Below are positions 16,713 to 39,100 of a DNA stretch of 64,000 bases, piece by piece. Location of the stretch: positions 30,194,001-30,258,000 of the forward strand of contig NC_088797.1 of NCBI RefSeq assembly GCF_011386835.1, read 5' to 3'. This DNA comes from Chrysemys picta bellii. Taxonomy: Eukaryota. Below the pieces are notes generated by a model. The model had not been told where the DNA came from, searched no databases, and worked only from the letters and a program-made list of their open reading frames with translations. A program made the position numbers and the translations under genes. Numbering within the stretch: the stretch's first letter is position 1; each line of letters begins with the position of its first letter.

Positions 16713-17186
16713 CAGTGTCCCAATCAGTGGGTTGTGAGAAGGTTGTAGATGAGTCATGGGCCTGGTGTGGATGGGAGGTCCCAGCAGGCTAAGGGGGTTA
16801 GAAAGAGAGCCTGCATTGCACTCACCCCCCAACAGCAGCTCCTGTCCTGCAGGGCTGGGCCCAACTCCCATCTCTGGCCATTCTGGGCCAAAGCTGAGTG
16901 GCGCTGCAACCCCACGCGCCAGGTTGGGGAACTGGGCCCAGCACCATGGGACAGGAGCTGCTGCTGCAGGGTGAGTGTAGAGCAGACTTGCTCTCCAGCC
17001 CCCTTTCCCTGCAACCTCCCCTCTGCACTGGGCTGGGATTAGGGTTGCAGTGCTGGTCCCCTGTCTGTGGAGGAGGAGAAGAATGCTGACCTATGATTGG
17101 GGAGGAGGTGGCATGAATTTGGACCTACACTAAAAAAAGAAAATGCAGTCGGTGGGTCACTTGAGTAGAAGGTTTGGGAACCCCTG
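16713..17186. mobile_element. hAT MITE
   Basis: Termini CAGTGTCCCAA / TTTGGGAACCCCTG; TSD CACTAACC/CTCTAACC (7/8 match). Confidence 0.7.
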
Positions 17187-19119
17187 CTCTAACCTACTAA
17201 ACCCTACTCCTCTCCCACAGTTGGGGAAGAACCCAAGAGTCCTGAGTCCCAGCTCCCCCACTGCTCTAGCCCACTAGACCCCACTCCCTTCCCAGAGCTG
17301 GGGATAGAATCCAGGAGTCCTGACCATCACCCCTCCCCTCCCCTTCTCTAACCATTAGACCCCACTTTCACAGCAATGCAAGGGGCAGGGAGTGGAGATA
17401 GCATTTCCCCAAGGGCCCCCTACACCTCATCTTGTATTTCCAGTTCAGCTTCTTTTTTCCCCGCTATACAGAGGGTTATTTCAGGGCATTACCCTGGCTC
17501 CTGGCCAGGTACGAAGGAGCTGCTCTCAACTCCTTTGCTGGTTCATAACCCGAGTGCAATGGGAGAGATGTAAACAGGAGCTTAGGGGGTGAAATTGCAG
17601 CTCTCAGCATGATCAGATAACATTCCTGTGACTGCCCAGGGCTCTGCTGCTTGTTCAGCTCCCCTTCTCCGGCCTCTTGCTGCCAAGGAAGCTCAAAGCT
17701 TGTTCATAAATTAACCCTTGGTACAGGCAAAATGAGGCATAGAGAGGAAGCAAGCTGGCTATGGTCATAACGGCAGGAGTAGGTACAGAAACCGGGAGTC
17801 CTGACTCAGCGCCCCCGTCATGCCAGGCCTCGAGACAATCAGAGAGACAGCCCTTGCCCTGAAGAGCTCACAGTCTAAGTAGACAAAGAAAGGGTTTGTA
17901 GATGGTTAAACTGAAACCCAGAGAGATGAAGTGACTTGCACGAGATCACACAGGGAGGCTGTAGCAGAGCTGGGAATGGAAGCCAGATCTCCTGGGTCCC
18001 AGCTCTGTGCCTTAAAGACAAGGCCAGCCTTCCTGTCTCTTACAATGATCAGGGACTGCGTCTTTGGTGTTGCCATAGAACAGCATAGCTCAGGCAATCG
18101 CAGGGTGAGAGAAAACACTCCCCAGCAGCCTGATTCTGTCCAGCAGGAGGCAACGACACACAGACACACAATACATTGCAGCCAGCACAATTCATGGACA
18201 ACGCTGTAGTTATTGTGTAGCATCATTTACCTGCTGCGAGAAGCACCATGTACAGTTTGTGTTGCTGCCCATTTTCGACCCAAGCAGCTAGTCAAATTTC
18301 AGGACTCCGGGAATGTTCCAGTGAAGAGGAGAAATTGCTGATACTCAGGTATTTCTTTGATGCACTCTTGGTTATTTATAAGAAATGTACACAAAGCCCT
18401 GATTCTCTGAATGCAGGAGGAACCAAGAACAAAATGAGAGGATTTCTGCATGTTACCAATTAACTGCATAAAAAATGACCCTTTCAGTTGCAACTCAATA
18501 GTCTAAATCCAAATTTTACAGCTGAGAGAGCTGTCTCCTTCTGATACACCCCTGGGATAAGTCTATGCACCACAGCCCCTAGTTCCATGCTGGGGTCAGC
18601 ACTGACTGCGACAGGAGAGCACCCCCTACTGACCTCCCATCCTGCTCCCTGCAGCAAAGAACCCTCTAGTGTCACACTGGGGCATTGGGGGGAGCACTTA
18701 GTGTGAGGGGAGTGCTCCCTACTGAGCCGTTCATCCCTCAGGCATGGCGGCAGTAGCAGCTTCCCTAGCCTTCTCTGGATATGTATCTGGGCTGCATGAG
18801 AAACTCAATCTCTGCTTAGTCAGCAGGAGGCACTGTGGGGTGGTCACCCATGGGCTAAGCAGCAGCACTGTAGCCAGACGTCAAGGACTAAGATGGCAGC
18901 CTCGGATTCAGAGCCGAGCCTCCAGAGAAGAAGCAGTTCTTGGAGTCTGCATGAGGGAGATGTAGCCACACCTCAACGGGGAAATATCCTCCAGGAGGCA
19001 AAGATGGCCTCCAAAGAACACTGGCCAACCAGTCAGCCGAGATGTTCACTAAGGAAAGCTAGAAAATCAAGATGGCCACAAAGAAAAGTAGACCACCAAC
19101 ATGGCCACCACCATGGGGC

Positions 19120-20310
19120 CTAGCAGGCTAAAGCAGGGTCATGCAGGCCTCGCCACAGCCGGATGATATCCTGGGGTGTCCTGTGATCCACCATGATGAG
19201 TTCCTTGTAAGCACACAAGTCCTCCTGTCCCTCGGCCTCCATGTTGAAGGTCCAAAAACCAGGGTGGTTCTGTGGCACCAGCGCCAGTTCTCTCAGGCAG
19301 ATCCCCAGGTAGATGTTGTCGATGGGAAAGAGGGGCAAGTGGCACGAGGCCTCGTGGAGCCGGGTGGCCACATCCCGTGAGCAAAGGATTCCTCCACCCC
19401 CCACATAGGGTGGGTAGGTGCCCTGATAGAAGGACTCAGGGACATAGTGCTTGTGTTTGCAGTCATGGACTGGGGCAGCATCCTGTATAACATGGCCAGC
19501 AAAGAGGCCCCGGCGAGTGACAGCATCAAAGCTCCCAGCGTAAGCCATCAGGGTGTCCACCCTAACAAAGACATCATCATCCCCCAGGAAGATCAACTCC
19601 ACACTGGGGCAGTGGCCCCGCAGCCACCCTAGGAACAGGATGTTCTTTAGGCTGAGATTGTAGAAGGTATCCTGGAAGTCCCAAAGCAGGAGATCCCTGT
19701 TTTTCCATCTTTCCAGCTCTAGAAGCGCCTCCAGATCTGGATGCCCGTCCCCTGAGCCCTGCCTGCCCAACAGGAAGAGCGTCTGCACTGTCACATTCCT
19801 CACTAGCCCCGTTCGGCCCCATGTCTGCCGGATGGCTTGACGTCGGTCAAAGTTGGCCATCTGGGACCTAACAGCCACCAGCAGTTGGGTCCCATTTGGG
19901 CAGGCCTCATCATCTGCTGGCCCAACTAGCAGCGGGTAGTCCCTGCAGTGCATGGAGAGGACGAAAGCCTGGAGGTGGCTAGGGTAGGAGGAGAAATCTA
20001 CTAGCCTCTGGGAGGCTTCATGGAAACTCTCTCCACACGTCCCTGGCAGTGTGAGGTTGAACTGGGCTGTGGTGTTCCTCAGTATGGGGTTTTCCAGCCG
20101 GTCCATGTAGAGCAGCAACAGGTCCCAGAGGGGAAGGCCATGGAGGTCCCTGTGCTGCCACAGCCTCAAATGGCCCCCAATGAAAGCTGATCTCCCTGAA
20201 GCCTGTAGACTGAGCGGCCTCCTTGAGAGCGTCACTACAGTGTAGACTATCACATTGGCGACAAAGACGCAGGACAGCCAGACATAAGCTTTGATGTAGC
20301 GGAGCTTCAT
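19120..20310 (-). CDS. GT31 beta-1,3-N-acetylglucosaminyltransferase, B3GNT2/B3GNT8 subfamily (B3GNT2-like), 396 aa, single coding exon
   Basis: N-terminal type II TM anchor; motifs RRQAIRQTWG, LFLLG, DTFYNLSLK, GDDDVFV, YPPYVGGGG, FPIDN and C-terminal Cys. The ATG at 20310 follows an acceptor at 20330. The upstream 38 codons in the ORF track are intronic. Confidence 0.9.
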   Translation of the reverse strand: MKLRYIKAYVWLSCVFVANVIVYTVVTLSRRPLSLQASGRSAFIGGHLRLWQHRDLHGLPLWDLLLLYMDRLENPILRNTTAQFNLTLPGTCGESFHEASQRLVDFSSYPSHLQAFVLSMHCRDYPLLVGPADDEACPNGTQLLVAVRSQMANFDRRQAIRQTWGRTGLVRNVTVQTLFLLGRQGSGDGHPDLEALLELERWKNRDLLLWDFQDTFYNLSLKNILFLGWLRGHCPSVELIFLGDDDVFVRVDTLMAYAGSFDAVTRRGLFAGHVIQDAAPVHDCKHKHYVPESFYQGTYPPYVGGGGILCSRDVATRLHEASCHLPLFPIDNIYLGICLRELALVPQNHPGFWTFNMEAEGQEDLCAYKELIMVDHRTPQDIIRLWRGLHDPALAC

Positions 20311-20774
20311 GGTGTGTATGGGGGGGGTGCTGTGGAGCAAGGAAGGGAAGGGGTTAGAGGGTACATCCCAATTGCATTTGAGGCACCTCCCTGTACCACC
20401 ACACACACCCAAACAGCCTCCCACAGCCGATTAACTACCCCCTCCCACAGACACCTCACTGCCCAGCAGGACTTTTCAGGTACCTGCCTCCCACACACAC
20501 CAACAGCCCCCCGTGGCCATTCAACTACCATCTGTGTGCATACTCTCCACAGCCATTCAACTACCCCCTGCACACACACACCTTGACAGTCTCCCAGAAT
20601 GTATCAGGTATCCCCACACAGACAATCCCATGTTTCAGGTACCCCCACATGCACCCTGACAGCCCCTCCAGGACTTTCCAGATAACTGCTCTCCCCCAAA
20701 CCCTGACAGATATCCATGGCCATTCAGCTATCCCCCCCACACACACACACACCTCTGCCCTTTTTGGTACTTAC

Positions 20775-20836
20775 ATGGCACTTCTGCTTGACTTCGTTCT
20801 CAGAGCATTTCACCCAGGTGGGTTTGTCTCTTTATA
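20775..20836 (-). promoter_or_regulatory. TATA box and short non-coding first exon of the B3GNT2-like gene
   Basis: Minus-strand TATAAA at 20831-20836; GTAAGT donor at 20774; pyrimidine tract and CAG acceptor at 20330-20332. Confidence 0.6.
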
Positions 20837-21339
20837 TCCATTGTAGAGTGGGAACCGGAAGCCTGGAGTTGGGAGGGGCAGCAGTGACAGAGTCTGGAGT
20901 TCTAGCCTCCCTGCTCTAGCCACTAGCCTCCATTCCCCTTCCAGAGCCAGGATAGAACCCAGGAGTCCTGGTTCCTAGCCCCCTGCTCTAGCAACTAGAC
21001 CTCACTTTGCCCCTAGAGCTGGGAGCTGATCGTCCCTTCTGCAGAGGAGCTGGTTTCAGCTTTCAGTGGGTGGGGCGATGATCGGCTCTTATCTTGAGTC
21101 AGGTGCAGAGTCCTTTAGGGGGAGGGAAGCAATTGGGACAGTGCAATGAGAATAAGAGGTGGGGGGGGGACATTAATCTCGAGAGTCAGGCAGCAGCAGT
21201 GGGGTCAGTACAAACCGGTTCCTAGCTGTTCATAGTGCTAGTGCTGCTTCCCACCCACCCTCCCCATTTGGCACAGGGAGGGCAGGGGTGGGTCCTGGCT
21301 CCCAGTCCCTCCTGTCTATCCCATGAGGCCCCCCTCTCC

Positions 21340-21520
21340 TCCCAGAGCTGGGGATAGAACCCAGGAGCCCTGACTTCCAGCCCCACTCCCATTGTAGCCA
21401 CTAGACCCCCCTTCCCAGACCTGGAAATAGAACCCAGGAGTCCTGACTCACAGTCTCTCTTGTTCTAACCCACTAGACCCCACTCCTCTCCCAGAGCTGG
21501 GGATAGAACCCAGGAGTCCT
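21340..21520. repeat. GC-rich dispersed tandem repeat (CCCAGAGCTGGGGATAGAACCCAGGAGTCCTG...CCACTAGACCCCACTCC)
   Basis: The unit recurs here and at about 16570, 17190, 20920, 23440, 23740, 24420-24620, 39680 and 46450. Confidence 0.75.
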
Positions 21521-23576: not shown

Positions 23577-24100
23577 TGCCGGTACTTTGCGTCTCTAATG
23601 CAGGGAGCTGTATGTGACCCTCTCCGTTCCAGACGGGGTTATTTTCAGGCGGTGTCCAGAGAGTCAAGAGGAGACTCTAGCCTCTTGTTCAGCTGCAACC
23701 TGTCAGCAGGACATGAACCAAAGGAACCACTAGATTCCCCCTCCCCTCCCAGAGGTGGGAGTAGAACCTAGGAGTCCTGAGAGGGCTAGATGAGCCAGGA
23801 GGTTCAGCAGGCCCTGTGCTGGGAGATGTATAGCCCCTGGACAAAGGAAAATGGAAGATCCAGCTGGATCTATAGTGCCTGGAGTACCCAACATCTGGGT
23901 GATCCATAGTGCTCGGGGCTGGGACAGCCAGCTGGTGAGCTATAGGATCCAAGGCAGTGAGATCTATAGGGCTCAGAGCTGTGTAATCCAGGGGGACTCT
24001 ATCAGACCTGGGGCAGTGGGATCCAGCAGGGATCTACAGGGGCAGGGGGATGTATAGGACCCAGGAAAGCGGGATCCATGGGGGATATCCAGCACCTGGT

Positions 24101-27100
24101 CTAGGAGAGGCTCCGTGACCGCCCCTGTGTGGCTCTTCCGGCTGTCCTGGCAGTGTTGCCCTTGGCCAGGCGCCCTGCATGTCTCCACAGCAGCCTCTCA
24201 TCGATGCCCAGCGCTGCCAGCACCTGGGAGAAGCGCCGCTCCACAGCCAGGCGAGCATTGGTCTGTGAGGTGAGAGGCAGGGACATCATTCACATCACCC
24301 ACAGAACGGAGCTGGGCTCAGGCTGCCCACCCCACTGCCCACACTTGAACCTCTCCCAGCTGAGCTAGCAGGGATCTACTATAGCCAAGAGAGCAATAGG
24401 AGTTCACAACCAGGAATAAAATCCAGGCACCCTGGCTCCCGGCCTCCCTGCTCTAACCACTAGACTCCCCTCCCAGAGCTGAAGATAGAACTGAGGAGTC
24501 CTGGGTGCCAGTTCCCCCTGCTCTAACCATTAGACCCCACTTCCCTCCTAGAGCCAGAGATGGAACCCAGGAGTCCTGGACTCCCAGCCTCCTCCCCCTG
24601 CTCTAACCCACCAGCTCCCACTCCTTTCTCACCTGCATGACACGCTCAAAGAGGTAGGGGCGGCTCTCCACCCTCTCTTGGATCTCCCGCAGCTGGGCAT
24701 CGTACTCTGTCATGCGCTGCTGCTCCAGCCTCCTAGAGCAACAGCACAGAGAGGTAACAGAGGGGTAGCCGTGTTAGTCTGAATCTGTAAAAAGCAACAG
24801 AGGGTCCTGTGGCACCTTTGAGACTAACAGAAGTACTGGGAGCATAAGCTTTCGTGGGTAAGAACCTCACTTCTTCAGATGCAAGATCTGAAGAAGTGAG
24901 GTTCTTACCCTCGAAAGCTTATGCTCCCAGTACTTCTGTTAGTCTCAAAGGTGCCACAGGACCCTCTGTTGCTTAGCACAGAGAGGGTGACTGCAGCAAA
25001 TCCCACCCCCAATCCCTGCCCCCCCTTCAGTGCCCATTCACAAGGACACTCAGGGATCTGCTGGATCCTCTGCCCCAGGGCACTGGCTGTACTGGGGAAA
25101 TATTACTGCCCACCAGGATCAGAACAGATACCCCAATCCCAACACCTAGGCCCCAGGTCCTTTAGGATCTGGTCCAGTAGAGTTGGAGGATCCAGGGGGA
25201 ACTATAGGGTCTGGGAGAACCAGGGGATCTATAGCTGCTGGGCCATTGGGGCTGGGAGATGCAAGAGGCTCTGTGAAGTCTGGGAAATCGTGGGAGATCT
25301 ATAGGGTATGAGAGATCTGGAAGCTCTATAGGGCCTGGGTGAGGGGAGGACTGGGTGATCCTGCAGGATCGTTGGGTTTAGATCAGAATCTGAAATCTGC
25401 CCATTAAGCTTATCTCAAATCTTCCTTTTTCACTTAATGACAGGTTTCAGAGTAGCAGCCGTGTTAGTCTGTATCCTCAAAAAGAATAGGAGTATTTCCG
25501 AAGAAGTGGGTTGTAGCCCACGAAAGCTTATGCTCTAATAAATTTGTTAGTCTCTAAGGTGCCACAAGTACTCCTGTTCTTTTTCACTTAGGTAATTTAA
25601 CACCTGTCCCAGTCACATGGCTCCTCAGTTTCAGCCCAGCACTCCTGCAATGTCTGAGCCCAGGAGTCCTCAGGGGTCTTTGTGTGTGTCACTGTTGGTG
25701 TCCGTGTGGTGTGTAGAGTGTGGATGTGTGTCCAAGTGTGTTTGTGTCGGTATAGGTGTTGGTGTAGTTGTGTGTATTATGTGTGTGTCTGGGCATTGGG
25801 GGGGTGTCTGTATGTAGGTTTTATGTCTGGGTGTCAGTGTGTCTGCATGTTTGTGTGTCAGGGTGTTCAGGGTATGTGTGTTGGGGGGTGTCGTGAATGT
25901 TTGTGGAAGTCGGTGTGTCTGTATGTTGGGGTGTGTGTGTCAGGCTGCCTGGATGTCAAGGGGTGTTGGGGTGTCTGGGTGTCAGCGTGTTAGGAGGGAA
26001 TCTGAATGTTGGTATGTCTGGACGTTGGTGGTGGTCAAAGTGTCTGGGAGTTGGTGTGTGTGTGTGGAGGGATTAGAGAGGGGTGTTGGTTTGTCTGGAA
26101 TTGGGAGGTGTCAGGGTGTCGGAATGTGTGTGTCAGTGTCTTTGCATGCATCCGAAGAAGTGGGCTGTAGTCCACGAAAGCTTATGCTCTAATAAATTTG
26201 TTAGTCTCTAAGGTGCCACAAGTACTCCTGTTCTTCTTTTTTCAGTGTCTTTGGTTGTCAATGTGAAAAATCAGTGTGTTGGGGTGTCAGGGGAGGGTAC
26301 CAGAGAAAGGTGTCAGACTGTCTGGGTGTCAATGTATTGGGCTGATGTTTCGGTGTTGTTGTGTCTGAGTATTGGGAGGGGCGGGGTATGGGAGGTGTTG
26401 TGGAAGTCGGCATGTTTAGGTGTCAGCAGGGAGATAGTGTGTATGGGTGTAGCTGTATAGGGGTGTGTCAGCGTGTAGTGGGTGTCTGAGTGTTGGCGGA
26501 GTCAGGGAGTCTCGTGTCAGCATAGCCAGGGCATATCTTTACCAGATGTTTCCATGCTGACAGTCTCTCACTCTTGGTTTATGTGTGTGTGTGTGTGTTT
26601 TTTTAACTCCTAATTTTTTTAACTCCCACTTTTGGGCCCCATTCACCGTAAGACCCAGTCAGAAGAGGAGCAGGATTTTTGTGGGGAACCAGCCACACCT
26701 AGTGGTTAATAACAATAATAAATACTAAATAGCTATTGATCACCATTATTAATAATTACTACATCTATATTAAATAGGGTGACTAGATGTCCCAATTTTA
26801 TAGGGACAGTCCCAATTTTTGGGTCTTTTTATTATATAGGTTCCTATTACCCCCCACAGCCCCGTCACAATTTTTCACATTTGCTGTCTGGTCACCCTAA
26901 TATTAAATAACGAAGATAAAATACTATTGATAATCATTAATACTACAATATTAATCACTATTATAAATAATTATTCAATTAATATTCATGCTAAAGGAGT
27001 ACTCAAGGACGAGAAGGCCATTGTGGAGAAACTAAATGAATTCTTTGCATCAGTCTTTACGGCTGAGGATATGAGGGAAATACCCAAACCTGAGCCATTC

Positions 27101-30100
27101 TTTTTAGGTGACAAATCTGAGGAATTGTCCCAGATTGAGGTGTCATTAGAGGAGGTTTTGGAACAAATTGATACATTAAGGAACAGATGGTATTCATCCA
27201 AGAGTTCTGAAGGAACTCAAATATGAAATTTCAGAATTACTAACTGTGGTATGTAACCTATCATTTAAATCAGCTTCTGTACCAAATGACTGAAGGATAA
27301 CTAATGTGACGCCAATTTTTTAAAAGGGCTCCAGAGGTGATCCCGGCAATTACAGGCTGGTAAGCCTGACTTCAGAACTGGGCAAACTATAGTAAAGAAT
27401 AGAATTGTCAGACACATAGATTAATATAATTTGTTGGGGAAGAGTCACCTTGCCAAATGCTCTTAAACAAAGTAAACTGTCGTGGGATAAGAGGGAAGGT
27501 CCTCTCCTGGATCAGTAACTGGTTAAAAGATAGGAAACAAAGGGTAGGAATAAATAGTCAGTTTTCAGAATGGAGAGAGGTAAATAATGGTGTCCCCAAG
27601 GGGTCTGTACTGGGCCCAGTTCTATTCAACATTTTCATAAATTATCTGGAAAAAGGGGTAAACAGTGAAGTGGCAAAATTTGCAGATGATATAAAACTAC
27701 TCAAGATAGTTAAGTCCAAAGCAGACTCCAAAGAGTTACAAAAGGATCTCACAAAACTGAGTGACTGGGCAACAAAATGGCAGATTAAATTCACTGTTAA
27801 TATATGCAAAGTCATACACACTGGAAAACATAATTCCAACTATATATATAAAATGATGGGGTCTAAATTAGCTGTTACTACTCAAGAAAGAGATCTTGGA
27901 GTCATTGTGGAGAGTTCTCTGAAAACATCCGTTCAATATGCAGCAGCAGTCAAAAAAGCTAATGATGTTGGGAATCATTAAGAAAGGGAAAGATAACAAA
28001 ACAGAAAATATCATATTGCTGCTATATAAATCCATAGTACGCCCACATCTTGAATATTGTGTGCATATGTGGTCACCCCATTTCAAAAAAGATATATAGG
28101 AACTGGAAAAGGTTCAAAAAAGGGCAACAAAATGATTAGGGGTATGAAACAGCTTCCATATGAGGAGAGATTAATAAGATTGGCACTTTTCAGCTTGGAA
28201 AAGAGACGACTAAGGGGAGATATTATAGAGGTCAATAAAATCATGACTGGTGTGGAGAAAATAAATAAGGAAGTGTTATTTACTCCTTCTCATAACACAA
28301 GAACTAGGGATCACCAAATGAAATAATAGGCAGCAGGTTTAAAACAAACAAAAGGAAGTATTTCTTCACACAATGCACAGTGAACTTGTGAAACTCTTTG
28401 CCAGAGGATGTTGTAAAGGCCAAGACTATAAAAGAACTAGATAAGTTCATGGAGGATAGGTCCATCAATGACTATTAGCTGGGATGGGCAGGGATGGTAT
28501 CCATAGCCTCTGTTTGCCAAAAGCTGGGAATGGGCGACAGGGGATGATCACTTGATGATTACCTGTTCTGTTCATTCCCTCTGGGGCACCTGGCATTGGC
28601 CATTGTTGGAAGACAGGATTCTGGGCTAGATGGACCTTTGGTCTGACTCAGTATGGCCGTTCTTATGTTCTTAATATTTGTAACAAATATTAAATTAATA
28701 TTGATTAGTATCCATAACTACAAACTACTATTATTCTCTATTAAAATATCAAAATATTGTTTAGTACTGTTCATAAATACTAAATTAATATCAATCATTC
28801 ATCAATACTAAATATTAGTTACTATTAAGAGACAAAAGATGAGTTGTGGGACAACAGATAAAGTGGTGGAGGCTTGTGGATAGGGAAGTTAGTCTGAGAT
28901 TTAAGGATTCTATGGAGGTAAGACAATGACCAAACCAACAGTGATGATACTAACAAGATTTTGGAGAAAATATCCAAACTTATTAAAAAAGTACACAAGC
29001 TGTCTGTGGCCTAACAAAAGAAAGAAAATATGGCAAGGAGCTGTGGTGATGGTCCATTAATGTGTAGAAGGCAGTAAAGAAGGAAAGGTTGAAGCGATGG
29101 CAGAAAGTAAGAACAGGGGAAAGTTATGAGGAATACAAGCGGGTAAAGAAAAGGGTGAAAAGAGCAGTTGTGGAAGCTAAGAGTCAGGCATTTTAGAGCC
29201 TTATATGCACACCTACTAACAAAGAAAGGTGGAAAAGAAATATTAGATTCGCCACAATTAAGCAAAGAAGCAAAGCAAAGAAACAGAGGACTTGGAAGCT
29301 GTGAAGTGTGTCAAAGATGAAAATGGAAAAGTACTGCTGGAAGACGGTGGAATCATTAGGAGATGGAAGTAGTTTTATGAGAAACTGTTAAATGAAGAGA
29401 ATGTGATGAAAACATTGAGGGAAGTATCCACAAGCAGTAACCTCACAGGACCTATCAGTATGATGGAGACGCAGACAGCGCTAAAGATGATGAAGCTTGG
29501 GCAGGCAATGGGACTGGCCAGTGTCCCAATCAAGCATTTAAAGCATTAGGCCATGAGGGAGTGGGATCAATGACAAACTTCTTCAACTTAATTCTCTGTC
29601 CTGGGAAAAAGCCTGAGGTGTGGAGCAAGAGCACATTGGTCCCTAACTTTATTCATAAAGGAGATGTGCAAGAATATAGTCGTTACCAACCCGTCATTGT
29701 AACGAGTCACATGAGGAGCTGGCTGGAAAGAATTATCGACAAAAGACTTTGGGAGAAGCTCTGCATCAAATAAGCAACAACCCGTTTGGGTTTATGCCAG
29801 GAAGGCTAACAATGAACGCAGTGTTTGCTGCCCAAATATTGTAGGAGATGTACAGGGAAATAACAGTATGTTCTGTTGTGAAGATAAATACAACTGGAAA
29901 GGGACCTAAGAGCACTGCATTAGAAGAAAATGGCTTACAAATCAGCCAGCAAAAAACAGAATGTTTTGTTGAGTGCGACAATGAAAAGCCAGTAAAATTA
30001 GGTGGTACAAAGTATGTGCAATAATTTAAATACCTTGGTTTAGTGCACTGCTGAGCCATGATGGGAATATAGATGCAGATGTTAGGAGCTACATGAAGAG

Positions 30101-33100
30101 CGCTTGGTATAAATGGAGGAAGTTGACAGGAATTATCTTCTATACAAATATGCCAAGTATTCAAAAGAGCAAAGTGTGTAGGATCATGTTTAGGCCAGCT
30201 ATGACGTATGGGTCGGAATAATTGCCAATGAGGAAGAGAGAAGAACAACTACTTCACACTGCCACTGCCAAAGCTCAGGTGGACACTGGGTAAGAGGAGA
30301 GCTATTAGGCTATGCAGTGAAACAGTACAGGCCATGATGCAGGTAGCCACCATCACAGAAAAGCTGAGGGAGTATCAACTGAGATGGCTGGGACATGTGA
30401 GACAACGAGATGTGTGATATGGTAGCCAGAGACAAGAACGACTAGTCACAGGACAAAGACCATAAGGAAGACCTAGAAAAAGATGGTTAGAGATGTTGAA
30501 GGAGGAGATGAAGCAGGTTTTTGTCAGCTTGGAAGACCCACTTGACAAGAACACTTGGAGATGAGGGTCAAGAGCTGCTGATCCTGAGTGATGGGACAAA
30601 GCGAAAGAGAAGACGAATAGATACTTAGCTCTTCTATAGTATTTTTCATCAGTAGATCTCAAAGTGCTTTATAAAAGCGGTTGGTATCGTTATCCCCATT
30701 TTACAGATGGAGAAACTGAGGCACAGAAAGGTGAAGTGGCTTCCTCAAGGTCACCCATCAGGCCATTTGCAGAGCCATGAATAGAACTCAGGTCTCCTGA
30801 GTCCCAGTCCAGTACTCTACCCAAGAGTATGCACTGAATACTAACATATATTGTAATGTTAATAAATATTAAATTAATATGATCATAAATACTAAATATT
30901 ACTACTACTAATTACTAAATATAAATTACTATTGTTAATAAATGTTAAAATATCAGTAGTTCCTGACTACTAAGTTAATATCACTATTAACAATTACTAA
31001 ATTAATACTGAGAGAGACAAGCTGGGTGATGTAATATCTTTTAAAGGACCAAATTCGGTTGGTTACCTGACCCAGCTTGTCTCTCTCATATCCTGAGACC
31101 AACATGGCTACAATAACACAGCAAACAATAAATTAATACTAACGACTATGTTTAAAAATATGATGTGAATCATGATTTATATTCATAAATAATATTCATC
31201 GCTATTAAGAATAGGAATATATTCACTAAAGCAGTTAATATTAAAATTAATATAAATAATTCATAGATACGAAATATCTATATTAATAATTATAGACTCA
31301 TAGACTTTAAGGTCAGAAGGGACCATCGTGATCATCTAGTCTGACCTCCTGCACATGGCAGGCCACAGAACCTCATCCACCCACTCCTGTAATAGATGCT
31401 TAACCTCTGGTTGAGTTACTAAAGTTCTCAAATCATGGTTTAAAGATTTCACGTACAGAGAATTCACCATTTCAACTAGTTTAAACCTGCAAGTGAACTG
31501 TGCCCCACGCTGCAAAGGAAGGTGAAAACTACCAAAGGTCTCTGCCAATTCCCAAATATGGCAATCAGTCAGACCCTGAGCATATGGCCAAGATTCGCCA
31601 GGCAGATATCTGGGAAAGAATTCTCTGTACTAACTCCGAGCCCTCCCCTTCTAGTGTCTCATCTCCAGCCATTGGGGATTTTTGCTACTGGCAGTCACAG
31701 ATGGGCCACATGCCATTGTAGGCAGAGTCCCATCATACCATCTCTTCCATAAAATTATCAAGCTCAGTCTTGAAGCCAGTTAGATATTTTGCCCCCACTG
31801 CTCCCCTGGGAAGGCTCATCCAGAACTCCACTCCTCTGATGGTTAGAAACCTTCACCTAATTTCAAGCCTAAACTTGTTGATGGCCAGTTTACATCCATT
31901 TGTTCTTGTATCCACACTGGTGCTTAACTTAAATAGCTCTTCTCGCTCCCTGATATTTATCCCTCTGATGTATTTGTAGAGAGCAATCATATCTCCCTCG
32001 GCCTTCTTTTGGTTAGGCTAAACAAGCCAAGGTCTTTTATTTCCCTCTCATAATGTAGGTTTTCCATTCTTTGGATCATCCTAGTAGCCCTTCTCTGTAC
32101 CTGTTCCCTTTCTTAAAGATGGGAGACCAGAATTGCACACAGTATTCCAAATGAGGTATCACCAGTGCTTTGGATAATGGTACTAACACTTCCCTGTTTC
32201 TACTGGAAATACCTAGTCTGATGCTTCCTAGGACTGCATTAGCCTTTTTCACAACCGTATTACATTGATAGCTCATAGTCATCCTGTGATCAACCAATAC
32301 ACCCAGGATTTTTCTCTTCCTCCGTTGCTTCCAACTGATAAGTCCCTGGGTCTAGCTTTTAGCAAAAATTCTTGTTGTTAGTCCCTAAATGCATGACCTT
32401 GCACTTTGCACAATTAAATTTCATCGCTTTTCTATTACTCCAGTCTACAAGGTCATCGAGAGCTTTTTGTCTGATATTCCGGTCCTCCTCAGTATTGGCA
32501 ATACCTCCCAAATTTGTGTCATACTCAAATTTTATTAGCACACTCTCACTTTTTGTGCCATGGTTAGTAATAATAATTTTAAATAAGATTGGTCCCAAGA
32601 CCGATCCCTGGGGAACTCCACTAGTAACTTCCCTCCAGCCTGACAGTTCACCTTTCAGTATGACCTCTTTGTAGTCTCCCCTTTAAGCAGTTCCTTATCC
32701 ACCTTTCAGTTCTCATATTAATCTCCATCTTCTCCAATTTAATTAATAATTGTTCATGTGGAACTGTATCAAATGCCTTACTGAAATCTAGGTAGATTAG
32801 ATCTACTGCCTGTCCTTTGTCTAAAATATCAGTTAACTTCTCAAAGAAGATTGGTCTGGTATGATCTACCTTTTGTAAAGCCATGTTGTATTTTATCCCA
32901 ATGACCATTCATCTCTATGTCCTTAACTACATTCTCTTTCAAAATTTGTTCAAAGACCTTGCATATAATTGAGGTCAAACTAACAGGCCTGTAGTTTCTT
33001 TTGCCCTTGCTTAAAAATAGGAACCATATTAGCAATTATCCAGTCATAGTGTTAATATTAAATATTGATCATTCATAAATACTAAATATTATTACTCTAT

Positions 33101-36100
33101 TATGAATGCAAAAATATTAATGTATATGGTTCATAAATATTATGTTAATAATGATCATTGATAGACACTGGGTTAATATCACTATTAACAAATACTACTT
33201 GCTTATAATTAATTTGTGTTATTATTATTATGATTAATTATTATTATTAGTAGTAGTATTGTTATTATTAATAATAATAATCATCATGTTTATTATGGTA
33301 GTGCCTAAGGGCCAACCAAGGTCGGACCCCATTTTGCAAAGCACTCATCTAACACCAAGTAGCAGATGGTCCCTGCCCTGAAAAGTTTACAGTCTACATA
33401 GACCAGACAGACACAGGTTGGGGGAAAGGGTGTAACACACAAGCAGAGTGAACACTGTGATTAATTAATAATTGAATATTAATGTGTGTGGGGGTATGTG
33501 TGAAATGTCATTGAGGCTGGTGAGAGTGGCTGCTACCCTTTATTTAAGATAGCAGAAAGAGACAGTAAAGCACCACTCCCAGTACAACAAAGGCAGTTGT
33601 GCGTTTGCCCAGGGATTGGAACAATGTGGGCAGATGGTTTTGGTTAGGCATGGACCACGTGTGTGGCTTACTTTACACTACAAAGTTGTGCCGTCATAGC
33701 TCTGTTGGCTAGGAGTGCGAAAAAAACCACACTCCCTGGCTCACATAGCTGTGCCAGCAACGCTTCTGGTGTAGACACAACTATACTGACACAAGAGCGC
33801 TTCTGTAGATTTAGGGCTGGTCTACAGTAGACAATTAGATTGACCAAATTATATCACTAAGTGACGAAGTTAAGCCGACTTAACCCCCAGTGGAGACAAC
33901 ACTGGTTCGATGGAAGAATTCTTCCACTGACCTAGCCACCACCTCTCAGGGAGGTAGATTTGCTACAGTGACCGGAGAATCCCTCCCATCACTGTACTAA
34001 GGGCTAGTTTACACTATAAGTGCCACATCAGCGCAGCTGCGCCGCTGTAGCACGTCTGGTGAAGACGCTCTATGCCGACGGGAGAGAGCTCTCCCATCGG
34101 CATTATAACTCCACCTCCATGAGAGGCGCCAACATAGCGCTGTCCGCACCGGCGCTTAGGTTGGTATAATTTACGTCACTCAGGGATGTGGATTATTCAC
34201 ACCCTGAGTGATGTACGTTATATTGAAGTAAATGGTAGTGTAGACAAGGGCTAAGTGTTTATGCTGAAGCACTACAGCAGGGCAGCTGCAGCACTGCTGT
34301 AGGTTTTTAAGTGTAAACATAGCCCTAGCTAATGTCATTCAGGGAGATGGTGTAGCTATGCTGGTGGAACTCCTTCTGCTGACCTACACTGCATCTCCAT
34401 TAAGGGGCTCTACCAGGATAGCTATGCTGCTATACTATGCCAGCAAAACATTCGCAGTGTAGACAGGCCCTATACCCGTGTATGCGTAAGAGAAGCAAAA
34501 GAGACCACACAGGAAGACAGACACAGACTCAGCCCAGACAAGCACGGTGTAGGACCCAGAGAGAAGCCTGAAGAGGCTTGAGGACTTCTGGGCCTGGTGC
34601 TACTGAAGAGGCTTGGGGCTGTGAGCAAATAAACTACCTCCTGTTTGGTTCCTCCTGTGTTCAAGGAAACAGGACTTTGTACAATCTTTGTTAAAAAACA
34701 GAATTGCACCCCAAAAAATAAATAAATAAATACCTGACTCCATCATCAATTTCTCCTCCTAACTGGAACAACTCACACCACCCTGAATTTGGCTAACTGC
34801 TCACATCAAAAGAAGTAGCAATTAACTACTACTGTTACCAAATATTAAATTAATATGATTCACCATTAAAATACTAACTGATATTAATCACTAACATTTA
34901 TTACTAAATTAATATTAGCTGCTATTTTTAATAAATATTGAAATAATACTGATCACCCTTAACACTAAATTTCTAATAATCACTAATATTTAAAAGTACT
35001 ACATTAATATGAACTGTTGTGAAACAATTACATTAATATTGATCACCATTATTAGCATTACATTAAAATAAATCAATATTATTTATTACTGAATTAATAT
35101 AGGCTACCACTGATAATTATGCATGTTGATTTAATATTGATCACTGTTAATAACCATACATTATTATTACATTTATTAATACATTATTTTAAATTGTTGT
35201 TGGTTATAATCAATATTAAATTATTGTGTATCTATATTATGAACAATTATTACAATTAATTATTAGTATTTTATCAAGCCCACTGATTTCAAGAAGGCCA
35301 CTTATGTGAGAAAAGTTACACATAAATAGAAGTGTTCTCTAGATCGTTATTATTAGGTGTATCGGTATCTAGAGGCCCTGACCAAGATTGTGGCCCCTGT
35401 TGTACCAGGTGCTGCACAGACACACAGGGTCTGTCTACTATGCAACTGGGAAGTGTGACTGCAGAATATGTAGCCAGGCCTGAGCTAGCTGATCCAGCTA
35501 GCGTGCTAAAAATAGAAGTACAGTCATGGCCGCACAGACGGTGGAACAAGCTAGCTACCCAAGTACAAACATACCCAGGGTTCTGAGTGGGATTGTACTT
35601 GGCTGCTAATCTGTGCTGCCACGGCTACACAGCTATTGTTAGCATGCTAGCTGGATCAAAGGTAGTTCAGGTATTTCTACATGTTCTGCAATCACACCTC
35701 TCAATTGCACTGTAGACAGCCTCCCAGTGAGAGCCGGTCTCTGCCCCAGTGAGCTGCCATTCTAAACAGACAAAGGGGCAGAGAGCAAACTGAGGTTCAG
35801 AGTGGAAAAAGGGACTTGCTGAAGTACAGTGGTAGAGATGGGAGCACAACCCAGGTGTTCCGAGCACCCGTCCTCTGCCCTATCTACTGACAATTGATTC
35901 CTATAAGAGAGGGTAGGGGGCCATGGGTCAGATTTAAGGGGCACCGTCAGAACTTCGGGGGAGCCCAAGGCTGGGCTAGCAGGGGGCTGAGGGTCAGGAT
36001 TGAGAGGCACCAGCAGCACCATGTGGTGGTTTCCACACTCCTCTCTCTCTCACACCAGGCTACTCCCTTCTTCCCCTCTCTGTTACCTCAGCTCTTCCCT

Positions 36101-39100
36101 CTTCCTTTGCGTGGTCTGGGCCAAGCTGCCCGGGGGACTGTAGGCTGCCAGGCACTTGGCCACTTCCCTCTGCACCTGCTGCTGCTTGACCCGGCGCTGC
36201 TCTGCTCGCCTCTTCTCCTGCTTCTCCCGACGCTCCCACTCCAACAGCAACAGCCTGCACCAGGAGCAAAGGAGAAGGCTCAGCCAGGTGGCGTCTATAA
36301 AAATTGTTCCAACTCCCCTGGCTGGGGGGAACCTCTGGCTGGGATAGCAGAGGGCTGTGGGTCAGGATTGAGGGGCAGAGCTGGGGGCAGTGGGGGCTGG
36401 AAGCCAGGGCTGGGATAGCAGGGGGATCTAGGTAGGCAGGCCAGTTGTCTGCTTTTAGCTGGACAGTCCTGCCTTTCTAACATTAGTCCCCTATCTGGCA
36501 TGTTCTTCAAAATGGTGCCCCTCGTGTGGCACTGGCAGAGGCGGGCTCGTGCCATTACCAGTAGCACTGGAATGTTCGGTACTTGGGGAACGTGTGAGTG
36601 GCCACCCTAGCTCTAGGGTCAGGATTGAGGGTTACCAGCAGATCTAGGGAGGGGGGAACCTAGGGCCGGGATAGCAGAGGGGCTGCAGCAGAGCTGGGGG
36701 GAGGCCAGGGCTGGGATAGCTGGGGTGGGAATTGATTTAAGGGCACTGTCCATACCTGGTGGCCTCCTGCCGTTTGTCAGAGGCTCTGGTGGATGGCACT
36801 GAGGGCAGGGGGTCGAACTCTGAGCAGGACTGGGACCCGCAGTGGAAGCTCCAGAGCTGGCGCAGCTGTTGCTGCTCCCAGTCTCTGAGCTCGTCCTCAG
36901 GCTGGTGCTGAGAGCTGCTGGCCACGTGGAGGTGGAAGGGTTTGCAGATGGTCAGCTTGGCTGAGAGGGGGACACAGAAAGCATTAACGGAGGGTCCCAG
37001 AACCCCTCCCTCATCAGCTGCACTGCCCCACCCCAGAAACAGCTGCATCTCAGCACCAGGGAAAGGGTCTCTATAAACAGCTCCTGTGCCCCACCCCAGG
37101 GATTCCTGTATAAACAGCCCCACCTCAGAGGCAGCTCCACCTTAGCGCCAGGCAAGGGGTTCTGTATAAACGGCTTCTTTACCCTACCCCAAAAGCAATT
37201 GCATCCATCTCCTTGGCTCACCTCTCACTTTCCTCTTCTCCAGCTGCTCCTGGAACCTCTTGTGGAGTGTCTCAAAGTCGGGGATGGTTTGGTTGATGAT
37301 GGGCTGGAACCGGGTCTTGTCTTTGGGGGCCAGCCCCCTGCCCTTCCTTCTGTGCCCCCTGGGGCTTGGGTCCTGGGGCTCTGTGGCCAGGCACAGGGCC
37401 TCAGCTCTCAGCCTGGCCCGGAGCTGCTGGGCGGAGGTGATTGCCTCCCAGGCTGGGGAGGACACAGCCTCTTCCAGACTCAGCAGCTGCTGAGCCAGTT
37501 GGAGCCAGTGCCTCCGCTCTTCCTGGAGCTGGCGTTTGCGGGCCTCGCTCCGGGCCTCCATCTTCCAATACAGCGAGGAGAGGGTGCTGGGGGAGGGATG
37601 GGGGGCTTGCTTGATCCTGCCCCGCTCAGTGCTGCTGCGCCCCCGTAAGCTGCCAGCACGTTGGTCTACACGGCCCTGCAAATCTGTCACTGTTGGGCGG
37701 ACACTGTCACGGGGGGAGTTGTTGGGGGCTCTGCGGGGCTCCCCCTTCTTCCCCTTGTCCAGGGAAGGGGCTGGGAGGAGGGCACGACCGTTAAGCGAGA
37801 ATTCCTCCCACATCCACTGGAAGGGGAAGGAGGGGCGGGGACTGTGGGGCAAGGAATCAGGGGTGCAGGAGTGAGCTGGCTTGGAGAGAAGGGTGTCCTC
37901 AGTAACGTCTCTCTGCCTGGTGGTGGGAAGGAGAGGAGATGATGAGTGTCAGGTCAGAGCAACGGGGCCATCTAGTCTGGTAGCCTCCAGATCAGACCTA
38001 ATGGACTCATCTAGTCTAGTATCACCATCCCGCCCTGGCCATTCTAGACTGGACCAAAGGGTTCATCTACAGGGCATACCAAACCCCTGACCACATCTCC
38101 CTCTGAGCTGGCAACAGACTCCTAGCTGCCCCCCTCCCCACCGCTCTAACCCAGTAGAGCCCACTCCCCTCCCTTTGTCTGTTCAGACTTTGAGCTCTTT
38201 GGGATTGGGACTGTCTCTCACTGTGTGTCAGGGCAGTGCCCAGTGCAGTGGGGGCCCCGATATTGGTCAGGGTGTGTGCAGTGCCTGGCACAACTATGGC
38301 CCTGGTCTTGGGATCTGTGCAGCACCTGCCACTAAACAGGTGCTGATCTCAGTTGGCACATCCAGGTGCTACTAATATAATCTCCATGGAGCTGCAGCAA
38401 GGATGAGTTTGGCCCAATGGCCATAAGGATCCCATCCAACCTACTCACCTTCCTGCAGATGGTGCTGAGTCCTGGTCTCCGTCAGAGGTGTCACTCACAC
38501 ATGGCTCCTGCATCTTGCACTGTGGGGCCTGGCTGCCTCTTCTCCCTGAAGGGGGGCCTCTGGGTGATCCCTTCCTCTTCCCTTTCCTCATCAAGACCAC
38601 GATTCCGTCACCGGAATTGAAAACCTCCTCCTGAAACCGCAGAGCAGAGGCAAGAGGGACCCAGCTTTTCCCCAGGGAGACTGGCTGGCTCAGGGCAGCA
38701 GGGAATGGGACACGGGGCCTTTCCCCTCTAGGAGCAGGGCCGGCTCCAGGCACCAGCTTAACAAGCAAGTGCTTGGGGCGGCCAAGGGAGAGGGGCGGCA
38801 CGTGCGGCAATTAGGGGGCAGCAGGTCCCTCGCTCCCTCTAGGAGCGAAGGACCTACAGCCGAACTGCCGCCGCCGATCGCAGCTTTTTTTCCCCCCCCA
38901 ATTGCCGCCGCCGGTCGCAATTGCTATCGCGGCTTTTTTTTTTTTTTGCTTGGGGCGGCAGAAATGCTGGAGCCAGCCCTGTCTAGGAGATCCTGGCTCA
39001 AAGCTCCCTAGTCCACTAGCCCCCACTCCTCCCAAAGCTGGGAATAGAGTGTCCTGATGACCTGACTCCCTTGCTCCTTAGCCAGTGGTGTCGCTCTACA

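Follow-up and report, generated by a model that had tools for sequence, protein, structure and literature searches.

The question raised by this locus is whether a glycosyltransferase gene can be kept by selection after the catalytic base of its product has been lost. The window (the whole stretch analysed here, 64,000 nucleotides of Chrysemys picta bellii contig NC_088797.1, positions 30,194,001 to 30,258,000) carries on its minus strand a single-exon gene related to B3GNT2, the poly-N-acetyllactosamine (poly-LacNAc) synthase, whose product has asparagine at the position of the catalytic aspartate of human B3GNT2. Comparison of turtle sequences suggests that the gene probably encodes a pseudo-glycosyltransferase conserved since the turtle ancestor, and we consider it fairly likely, on the same sequence grounds, that this is a maintained pseudoenzyme with a non-catalytic role.

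The protein and its active site

The coding sequence and its main protein features are as follows.

19120..20310, minus strand: B3GNT2-like coding sequence, single exon, 396 amino acids plus stop (open reading frame list and sequence)
20221..20289, minus strand: signal anchor or transmembrane helix, residues ~8-30, type II (hydrophobic YVWLSCVFVANVIVYTVVTL; aligns with the human B3GNT2 anchor)
19267..19848, minus strand: GT31 catalytic domain, residues 155-348 (Pfam PF01762 Galactosyl_T)

An earlier note on this DNA had described a full 396-residue frame with a transmembrane anchor, and both are borne out: the frame runs from an ATG at 20310 to a stop codon at 19120-19122, and an AlphaFold2 (AF2) model places an N-terminal helix at residues 2-30, corresponding to the hydrophobic stretch that aligns with the human signal anchor. 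A 434-residue version of the frame starts at a GTG upstream of the ATG. The protein is identical to record P0121, which is found in two assemblies, and its 90% cluster contains 31 more turtle sequences. Public gene models are named 'B3GNT2-like' (NCBI) or, in Chelonia, 'B3GNT2', and single-exon orthologous genes were called in Emydura, Carettochelys, Chelonia, Gopherus and Mauremys.

The PF01762 match (E 1.3e-36; 126.7 bits, with a threshold of 23), together with a GT-A fold, places the protein in CAZy family GT31. Human B3GNT2 was compared through its solved structures only, in sequence and fold searches alike; it is the best solved relative in HMMER (8sz3_A, E 1.8e-85), aligned over window residues 12-396 with ~39% identity. 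The AF2 model, built from a 76-sequence family alignment, has a predicted local distance difference test score (pLDDT) of 89.4 and a predicted template modelling score (pTM) of 0.83. Foldseek superposes it on human B3GNT2 structures with template modelling (TM) scores of 0.92-0.95 and root mean square deviations of 2.1-2.6 Å over ~335 residues, and the top 27 matches are all human B3GNT2, followed by B3GALT5 and B3GALT6. The structure model that the earlier note had proposed as a check thus shows an intact fold, and the cysteine pattern is the same as in human B3GNT2, in keeping with its remark that the structural cysteines are retained.

The alignment with human B3GNT2 is gapless from window residue ~137 to the C-terminus, so that the human number of a residue is the window number plus one; human numbers are used below for positions shared between proteins. 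In human B3GNT2, D333 is the catalytic base, Mg is held by D247 and H376, uridine diphosphate (UDP) by D215, K223 and D246, and the donor N-acetylglucosamine (GlcNAc) by K149, D245, Y289 and D332, whereas the acceptor site is formed by I276, A279, H282, Y300, Y303, I331 and F356 (PMC7948737, PMC7948508). The D333N form of the human enzyme does not restore poly-LacNAc in B3GNT2-knock-out cells, and H376Q, H376L, H376E, D247A, K149A, D245A, Y289F and D332A fail likewise (PMC7948737). The corresponding residues in the window are listed here.

19867..19869, minus strand: Arg148 (codon AGG) at human K149, a donor GlcNAc contact; AIKS becomes AVRS (alignment)
19573..19581, minus strand: DxD motif D244-D245-D246 (human D245-D247), kept (alignment)
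19447..19449, minus strand: His288 (codon CAC) at human Y289, a donor and acceptor contact; KYYIP becomes KHYVP (alignment)
19315..19317, minus strand: Asn332 (codon AAC) at the catalytic base, human D333; PIDDVY becomes PIDNIY (HMMER alignment)
19183..19188, minus strand: Asp375-His376 (codons GAT CAC) at human H376-S377, the Mg ligand; LVHSRKP becomes MVDHRTP (alignment)

An active inverting GT-A enzyme of this family would be expected to have an aspartate as base, a DxD motif whose last aspartate binds the metal, and a C-terminal histidine ligand. The window protein has the second of these (D246), Asn332 instead of the first, and Asp375 instead of the third, with a histidine one residue later. 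The earlier note had recognised the base substitution, the AIKS to AVRS change (K149 to R148) and the retention of the DDD motif, all of which the alignment reproduces.

These positions were followed through 19 aligned turtle proteins from pleurodires and cryptodires (among them the window, which is emydid-like, Platysternon, Chelydra, Mauremys, Gopherus, Chelonoidis, six sea turtles, Dermochelys, Pelodiscus, Carettochelys and the pleurodires Emydura and Pelusios) and through the family alignment, 63 of whose 76 members are non-turtle. No turtle has aspartate at the base position (18 Asn, and Thr in Chelydra), whereas 62/63 non-turtle members do, which places the base change on the turtle stem, before the pleurodire/cryptodire split. 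That split dates back more than 200 million years. The base position is encoded by AAC in each of the six turtles with DNA, whereas a salamander relative has GAT. A private allele or a read error at this position, as the earlier note had allowed for in asking whether orthologues keep the aspartate, is ruled out by the 19 turtle sequences and the common AAC codon. Its proposal that GAC became AAC at a CpG is plausible, as the codon before it has C as its last letter and the salamander reads GAC GAT, although it is unprovable.

Other active-site positions have changed in different ways in different turtles. The D332 equivalent is D, N, G or S; the D245 equivalent, which is the first Asp of the DxD motif and a donor GlcNAc contact, is D, G or Y; the K149 equivalent is K or R (K in 63/63 other family members); and the H376 equivalent is H in pleurodires and D or E in cryptodires, so the displaced metal ligand described by the earlier note is real in the window but is not general to turtles. 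Outside turtles these four positions are constant except in mammalian B3GNT8, apart from an Ala at D332 in one lungfish/coelacanth sequence. The substitution at Y289, also described previously, proves to be private to this genome, with Tyr in all 18 other turtles (TAC or TAT in the five others with DNA). All five catalysis and donor-sugar positions (K149, D245, D332, D333, H376) vary among turtles against a background of 124/297 variable columns (P 0.012). Turtles show no change in the contacts to UDP and the metal Asp (D215, K223, D246, D247), in the Gly loop or at Y300 and Y303; the last Asp of the DxD motif, an Mg ligand, is constant in 76/76 family members, and the acceptor contacts I276, A279, I331 and F356 show changes in single species only. 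As judged from these alignments, the loss of constraint is specific to the active site.

It is conceivable that the protein is instead a working glycosyltransferase of changed specificity, relying for instance on a different base, on a substrate-assisted mechanism or on some other donor sugar, and the invariance of the UDP-uracil, ribose and metal-Asp contacts and of the Gly loop, the largely kept acceptor residues, the intact fold and the purifying selection described below would all fit with this, as would an Asp or Glu at the H376 position, which could still bind metal. We regard it as unlikely, given that both D333N and H376E inactivate human B3GNT2 (PMC7948737), that no replacement residue has become fixed at D332, D245 or H376, and that Chelydra has Thr at the base position. 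Because the lost residues differ between turtle lineages, the pattern resembles relaxation and not the emergence of a new conserved active site.

Selection on the gene

Coding DNA was compared among six turtles, i.e. the window and the five genera with called orthologues. Pairwise ratios of nonsynonymous to synonymous change (dN/dS; Nei-Gojobori) are 0.23-0.35, and a codon model (Goldman-Yang) gives omega 0.334 with kappa 5.05; a fit with omega held at 1 is worse by 47 log-likelihood units (twice the log-likelihood difference 93.9) and is rejected with p 3e-22. The earlier note had held that a dN/dS near 1 would speak for incipient pseudogenisation, and the value is well short of that. With a synonymous length of 0.72 for the six-turtle tree and a nonsense share of 3.3% among point mutations, ~28 stop codons would be expected under neutrality, whereas none is seen (P 5e-13). 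Reading frames are full-length (396-399 amino acids) across the 19 species, the Pelusios record being partial. Turtle B3GNT8 served as the selection control in place of canonical turtle B3GNT2, and gives omega 0.37 (Emydura-Terrapene) against 0.23 for this gene across the same split (Emydura-window).

All of the turtle branches compared post-date the loss of the base, so that what selection has acted on is a protein in which the base was already gone. A functionless relic, looking intact through slow turtle evolution with a reading frame not yet hit, would be consistent with the drift in turtles of several positions that do not vary in other family members and with the long stem branch leading to turtles (0.45-0.5 changes per site). 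We consider it very improbable in view of the rejection of omega = 1, the missing stop codons, the full-length frames, a constraint at least equal to that on turtle B3GNT8, and the conservation of splice sites and a promoter block described below. Purifying selection in every turtle lineage examined argues for a maintained pseudoenzyme and not a decaying gene. If a pseudoenzyme is recognised by a kept fold, loss of a catalytic residue in all orthologues and purifying selection, the turtle gene shows each of these, and the earlier note's suggestion of an intact paralogue without catalytic residues, a candidate pseudoenzyme, has gained from the absence of Asp in 19/19 turtles, the dN/dS of 0.33 and the inactivity of human D333N and H376E (PMC7948737).

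Upstream of the coding sequence lie a promoter and a putative spliced leader.

20831..20836, minus strand: TATAAA box (sequence; kept in Chelonia, Gopherus and Mauremys)
20775..20805, minus strand: putative non-coding first exon (start placed ~30 nt past the TATA box)
20330..20774, minus strand: putative intron in the 5' untranslated region (UTR), with GT at 20773-20774 and AG at 20330-20331

The TATA box and spliced 5' exon of the earlier note are supported by these signals and by their conservation across other turtles, the splicing itself being putative. The donor is GTAAGT (20769-20774; GTAAAT in Chelonia) and a polypyrimidine tract precedes the CAG acceptor; five other turtles share the exon and both splice sites, the intron interior differing in length. 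A conserved exon block, GTGAAATGCTCTGAGAAC...AGCAGAAGTGCCAT, is found in the aligned turtles, and Emydura has TCTAAA at the position of the TATA box. The intron consists of loosely repeated units (GGTAGTTGAATGGC ... GTACCTGAAA), the number of which varies by turtle species; Tandem Repeats Finder, run on the intron and promoter, reports a CA run only and does not call the loose units. Just upstream of the promoter (~20900-21020) is an interspersed repeat resembling a short interspersed nuclear element (core ggactcctgggttctatcc), with further copies at ~17180-17370, 21290-21520 and 24430-24630 that appear as cross-hits between Emydura and the window.

Paralogue identity and genomic setting

A maximum-likelihood tree of 58 proteins (LG+C20 with posterior mean site frequencies, PMSF; supports given as ultrafast bootstrap, UFboot, and the Shimodaira-Hasegawa-like approximate likelihood ratio test, SH-aLRT) resolves into three clades, each containing cartilaginous fishes and each with support of at least 100/97.

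B3GNT8 clade: mammals, turtles, squamates, tuatara, amphibians, coelacanth and fishes (100/99)
Canonical B3GNT2 clade: platypus, goat, Hemiscyllium and teleosts (100/100)
Third clade: sharks and rays, sturgeon, the ~445-residue 'B3GNT2' of teleosts, lungfish, coelacanth, salamanders and turtles (100/97)

The window protein belongs to the third clade, represented in the trees by P0036, P0067, P0324, P0009, P0061, P0027, P0044, P0008, P0065, P0007 and the turtle proteins. Within it, lungfish, coelacanth, salamanders and turtles group together (100/99); canonical B3GNT2 is the sister group of the clade (99/93), whose internal order matches the species tree. Approximately unbiased (AU) tests reject the union of the window's sarcopterygian group with tetrapod B3GNT8 (p 0.006) and with the canonical clade (p 0.027). 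Scores against human B3GNT2 are given below.

Cod B3GNT2: 539 bits
b3gnt2a: 470 bits
Salamander third-clade protein: 382 bits
Danio third-clade protein: 349 bits
Window protein: 290 bits

On this phylogeny the gene is what survives in turtles of an ancient third B3GNT2 paralogue of vertebrates, whose clade is gnathostome-wide. The earlier note's assignment to a B3GNT2 paralogue thus stands, with the amendment that it is no recent copy; a turtle-specific B3GNT2 duplicate of recent date is ruled out by a clade that holds sharks to salamanders in species-tree order. The GT31 survey of Petit et al. names only B3GNT2 and B3GNT8 as ohnologues and puts extra teleost copies down to teleost duplication, its main text having no third subfamily (PMC8022947), and our literature search found no description of the base loss or of the third clade.

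Searching with a frog protein of the B3GNT8 clade brought up true B3GNT8 in Emydura, Terrapene, Malaclemys, Gopherus, Pelodiscus and Chelonia, and showed that Ambystoma and Latimeria carry B3GNT8 plus a member of the window's clade. Word searches and a full search found no third-clade member in mammals, birds, crocodilians, squamates or frogs, a result limited by the sensitivity of the former and by clustering at 50% in the latter. The top-scoring library representatives, P0135, P0136 and P0137, are 1900-2160 amino acids long with seven Galactosyl_T-like stretches each, and are probably either the product of gene models that merge tandem B3GNT-like genes or genuine multi-domain proteins.

The neighbours of the gene in the window are these.

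988..10242, minus strand: SART1, downstream neighbour, exons 988-1518, 6706-7125 and 9829-10242 (Pfam SART-1 and HIND)
24100..36776, minus strand: FAM161A_B-family gene (TSGA10IP-like), upstream neighbour (Emydura PF10595 gene aligned to the window)

The Emydura PF10595 gene (L001, 1-7056) is collinear with window positions 36776-24100, and the order TSGA10IP-like, B3GNT2-like, SART1 is common to Emydura and the window, with collinearity over 28 kb. In the Emydura B3GNT8 locus (L008, 1-21212), E1_dh and RNase_PH genes come after B3GNT8 and a leucine-rich repeat (LRR) gene lies ~9 kb upstream; these we take to be BCKDHA, EXOSC5 and DMAC2, in agreement with the gene order of human 19q13.2. Human B3GNT2 presumably lies at a locus other than TSGA10IP-SART1. 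The window gene shares neither the clade nor the synteny expected of a canonical B3GNT2 orthologue, nor the clade and the BCKDHA/EXOSC5 neighbours expected of B3GNT8. B3GNT8 orthology, suggested by marsupial and monotreme hits, is ruled out: phylogeny, synteny and the AU test all speak against it, and turtles have a B3GNT8 gene besides this one.

That the gene is simply the turtle orthologue of B3GNT2 or B3GNT8 with lineage-specific changes, and is already named, could be read from the NCBI names 'B3GNT2-like' and 'B3GNT2' and from the presence of mammalian B3GNT8 among the matches at ~42% identity. Set against the three well-supported clades, the AU tests (p 0.006 and 0.027), the separate turtle B3GNT8 beside E1_dh and RNase_PH genes, and the bit scores to human B3GNT2 of cod (539), salamander (382) and window (290) proteins, this is extremely improbable. 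The turtle gene is a member of GT31 and of the B3GNT2/B3GNT8 group, and is distinct from the B3GNT8, Cosmc and CHPF genes.

Degenerate motifs in B3GNT8 had been offered by the earlier note as an analogue of the turtle substitutions. This applies to mammalian B3GNT8 and not to B3GNT8 at large: comparison of P0398, P0394, P0395, P0397, P0420, P0400, P0404, P0370 and P0451 with the mammalian P0106 and P0286 shows that B3GNT8 of turtles, lizard, tuatara, amphibians and coelacanth has the full catalytic set (K149, DDD, K288, Y289, D332, D333, H376), and that D245E/Q, K288P, H376R/Q and the loss of F356 are seen in mammals only. Since B3GNT8 is catalytically complete in turtles, lizard, amphibians and coelacanth, its degeneration is confined to mammals.

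Possible roles and known counterparts

We picture the turtle protein, a member of the B3GNT2/B3GNT8 group, as a type II membrane protein of the Golgi which keeps the whole B3GNT2 fold and would not carry out inverting GlcNAc transfer. The base would have changed from Asp to Asn on the turtle stem lineage, after which the donor-GlcNAc residues and the second metal ligand would have been freed from constraint. The protein could then serve as a non-catalytic subunit, pairing with an active B3GNT (B3GNT2 or B3GNT8) through its alpha1, loop-alpha2 and alpha8 face, and its intact cleft may also hold UDP and LacNAc chains ending in galactose (Gal); either role would tune poly-LacNAc extension and would not carry the extension out. 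For the non-catalytic or lectin-like regulator of poly-LacNAc synthesis that the earlier note had put forward, the evidence is indirect and consists of the invariant UDP and metal contacts, the largely kept acceptor contacts and the dimer model described below. We offer only as a tentative proposal that this copy of the third B3GNT2 ohnologue, the last in amniotes, has become a dedicated non-catalytic Golgi subunit or lectin that dimerises with B3GNT2 or B3GNT8, binds UDP and LacNAc ends and sets poly-LacNAc chain length.

Human B3GNT2 is a dimer formed through alpha1, alpha2, alpha8 and the beta2-alpha2 loop, and for this reason a complex with B3GNT2 was modelled, using platypus B3GNT2 (residues 50-397) as a stand-in partner for the window protein (residues 50-396). 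The interface score (ipSAE) is 0.84 against 0.01 for the best of three controls, a score reached by 51/78 solved complexes and 2/108 mismatched pairs; runs agree in at least 98% of contacts, the partner has a pLDDT of at least 85, and the modelled interface (window residues 152-162, 188-203 and 379-387) is the face of the human B3GNT2 homodimer. The score shows likeness and not binding, because a structure exists for a like complex and because the partner is closely related within the family.

Several observations weigh against a maintained non-catalytic subunit. The dimer model may recall the solved B3GNT2 homodimer, and it joins proteins of different species. Fewer interface columns vary among turtles (6/24) than columns elsewhere (118/273), although at p 0.089 this is a trend only, and a 15-residue variability profile among turtles has no sharp pattern. 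An omega of 0.33 is moderate, not strong, constraint. On sequence grounds, the kept UDP and acceptor contacts would fit a still-active enzyme as well. Finally, word searches, which were saturated by fish, frog and B3GNT8 sequences, yielded no canonical turtle B3GNT2, a candidate partner.

The turtle protein resembles human B3GNT2 (PDB 6WMM, 7JHI, 8SZ3) in fold, type II topology, stem helices, Cys pattern, N219 sequon, DxD metal Asp, UDP contacts, Gly loop, acceptor residues and modelled dimer face, and differs from it in having Asn at D333, Asp at H376, Arg at K149 and His at Y289 and in belonging to another clade. Its third-clade relatives in sharks, sturgeon, teleosts, Protopterus, Latimeria and Ambystoma are of the same orthologous group and are annotated 'B3GNT2' or 'B3GNT2-like', but nearly all keep K149, D245-D247, Y289, D332, D333 and H376 (the exceptions being Glu at D246 in two salamanders and Ala at D332 in lungfish/coelacanth); the base is lost in turtles only.

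Mammalian B3GNT8 is the nearest functional analogy, being of the same B3GNT2/B3GNT8 group with degraded D245 and H376, although it is a different paralogue that keeps its own base and some activity (20-fold lower). It is described as associating with B3GNT2 to increase poly-LacNAc synthesis, its own activity being weak (PMC8022947, PMC7948737). The CHSY3-CHPF structures are distant fold matches of the turtle protein in Foldseek. Cosmc (C1GALT1C1) and CHPF (in CHSY-CHPF) have the GT31 fold and no or weak activity and act through an active paralogue, Cosmc being entirely without a DxD motif. They belong to distant subfamilies (12-17% identity). The turtle protein would act in the manner of mammalian B3GNT8 towards B3GNT2, Cosmc towards C1GALT1 and CHPF towards CHSY.

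Few pseudo-glycosyltransferases are known to us (Cosmc, CHPF, mammalian B3GNT8) and their origins are, to our knowledge, poorly documented. The turtle gene offers a clean case: the base was lost on a single datable branch, the turtle stem, the identical change (D333N) is known to inactivate the human enzyme, the selection that followed can be measured, and presumably active salamander, lungfish and fish relatives are available for comparison. The B3GNT2/B3GNT8 pair appears to be a trio, which bears on 'B3GNT2-like' naming and on comparisons of poly-LacNAc synthesis across vertebrates, and the degeneration of B3GNT8 motifs arose in mammals and is not ancestral to that gene. If the turtle protein is indeed a non-catalytic subunit or lectin, turtles would have followed, in their own lineage and further, the path that mammals took with B3GNT8, and the protein would be a natural D333N 'substrate trap' kept since the turtle ancestor, i.e. 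for more than 200 million years.

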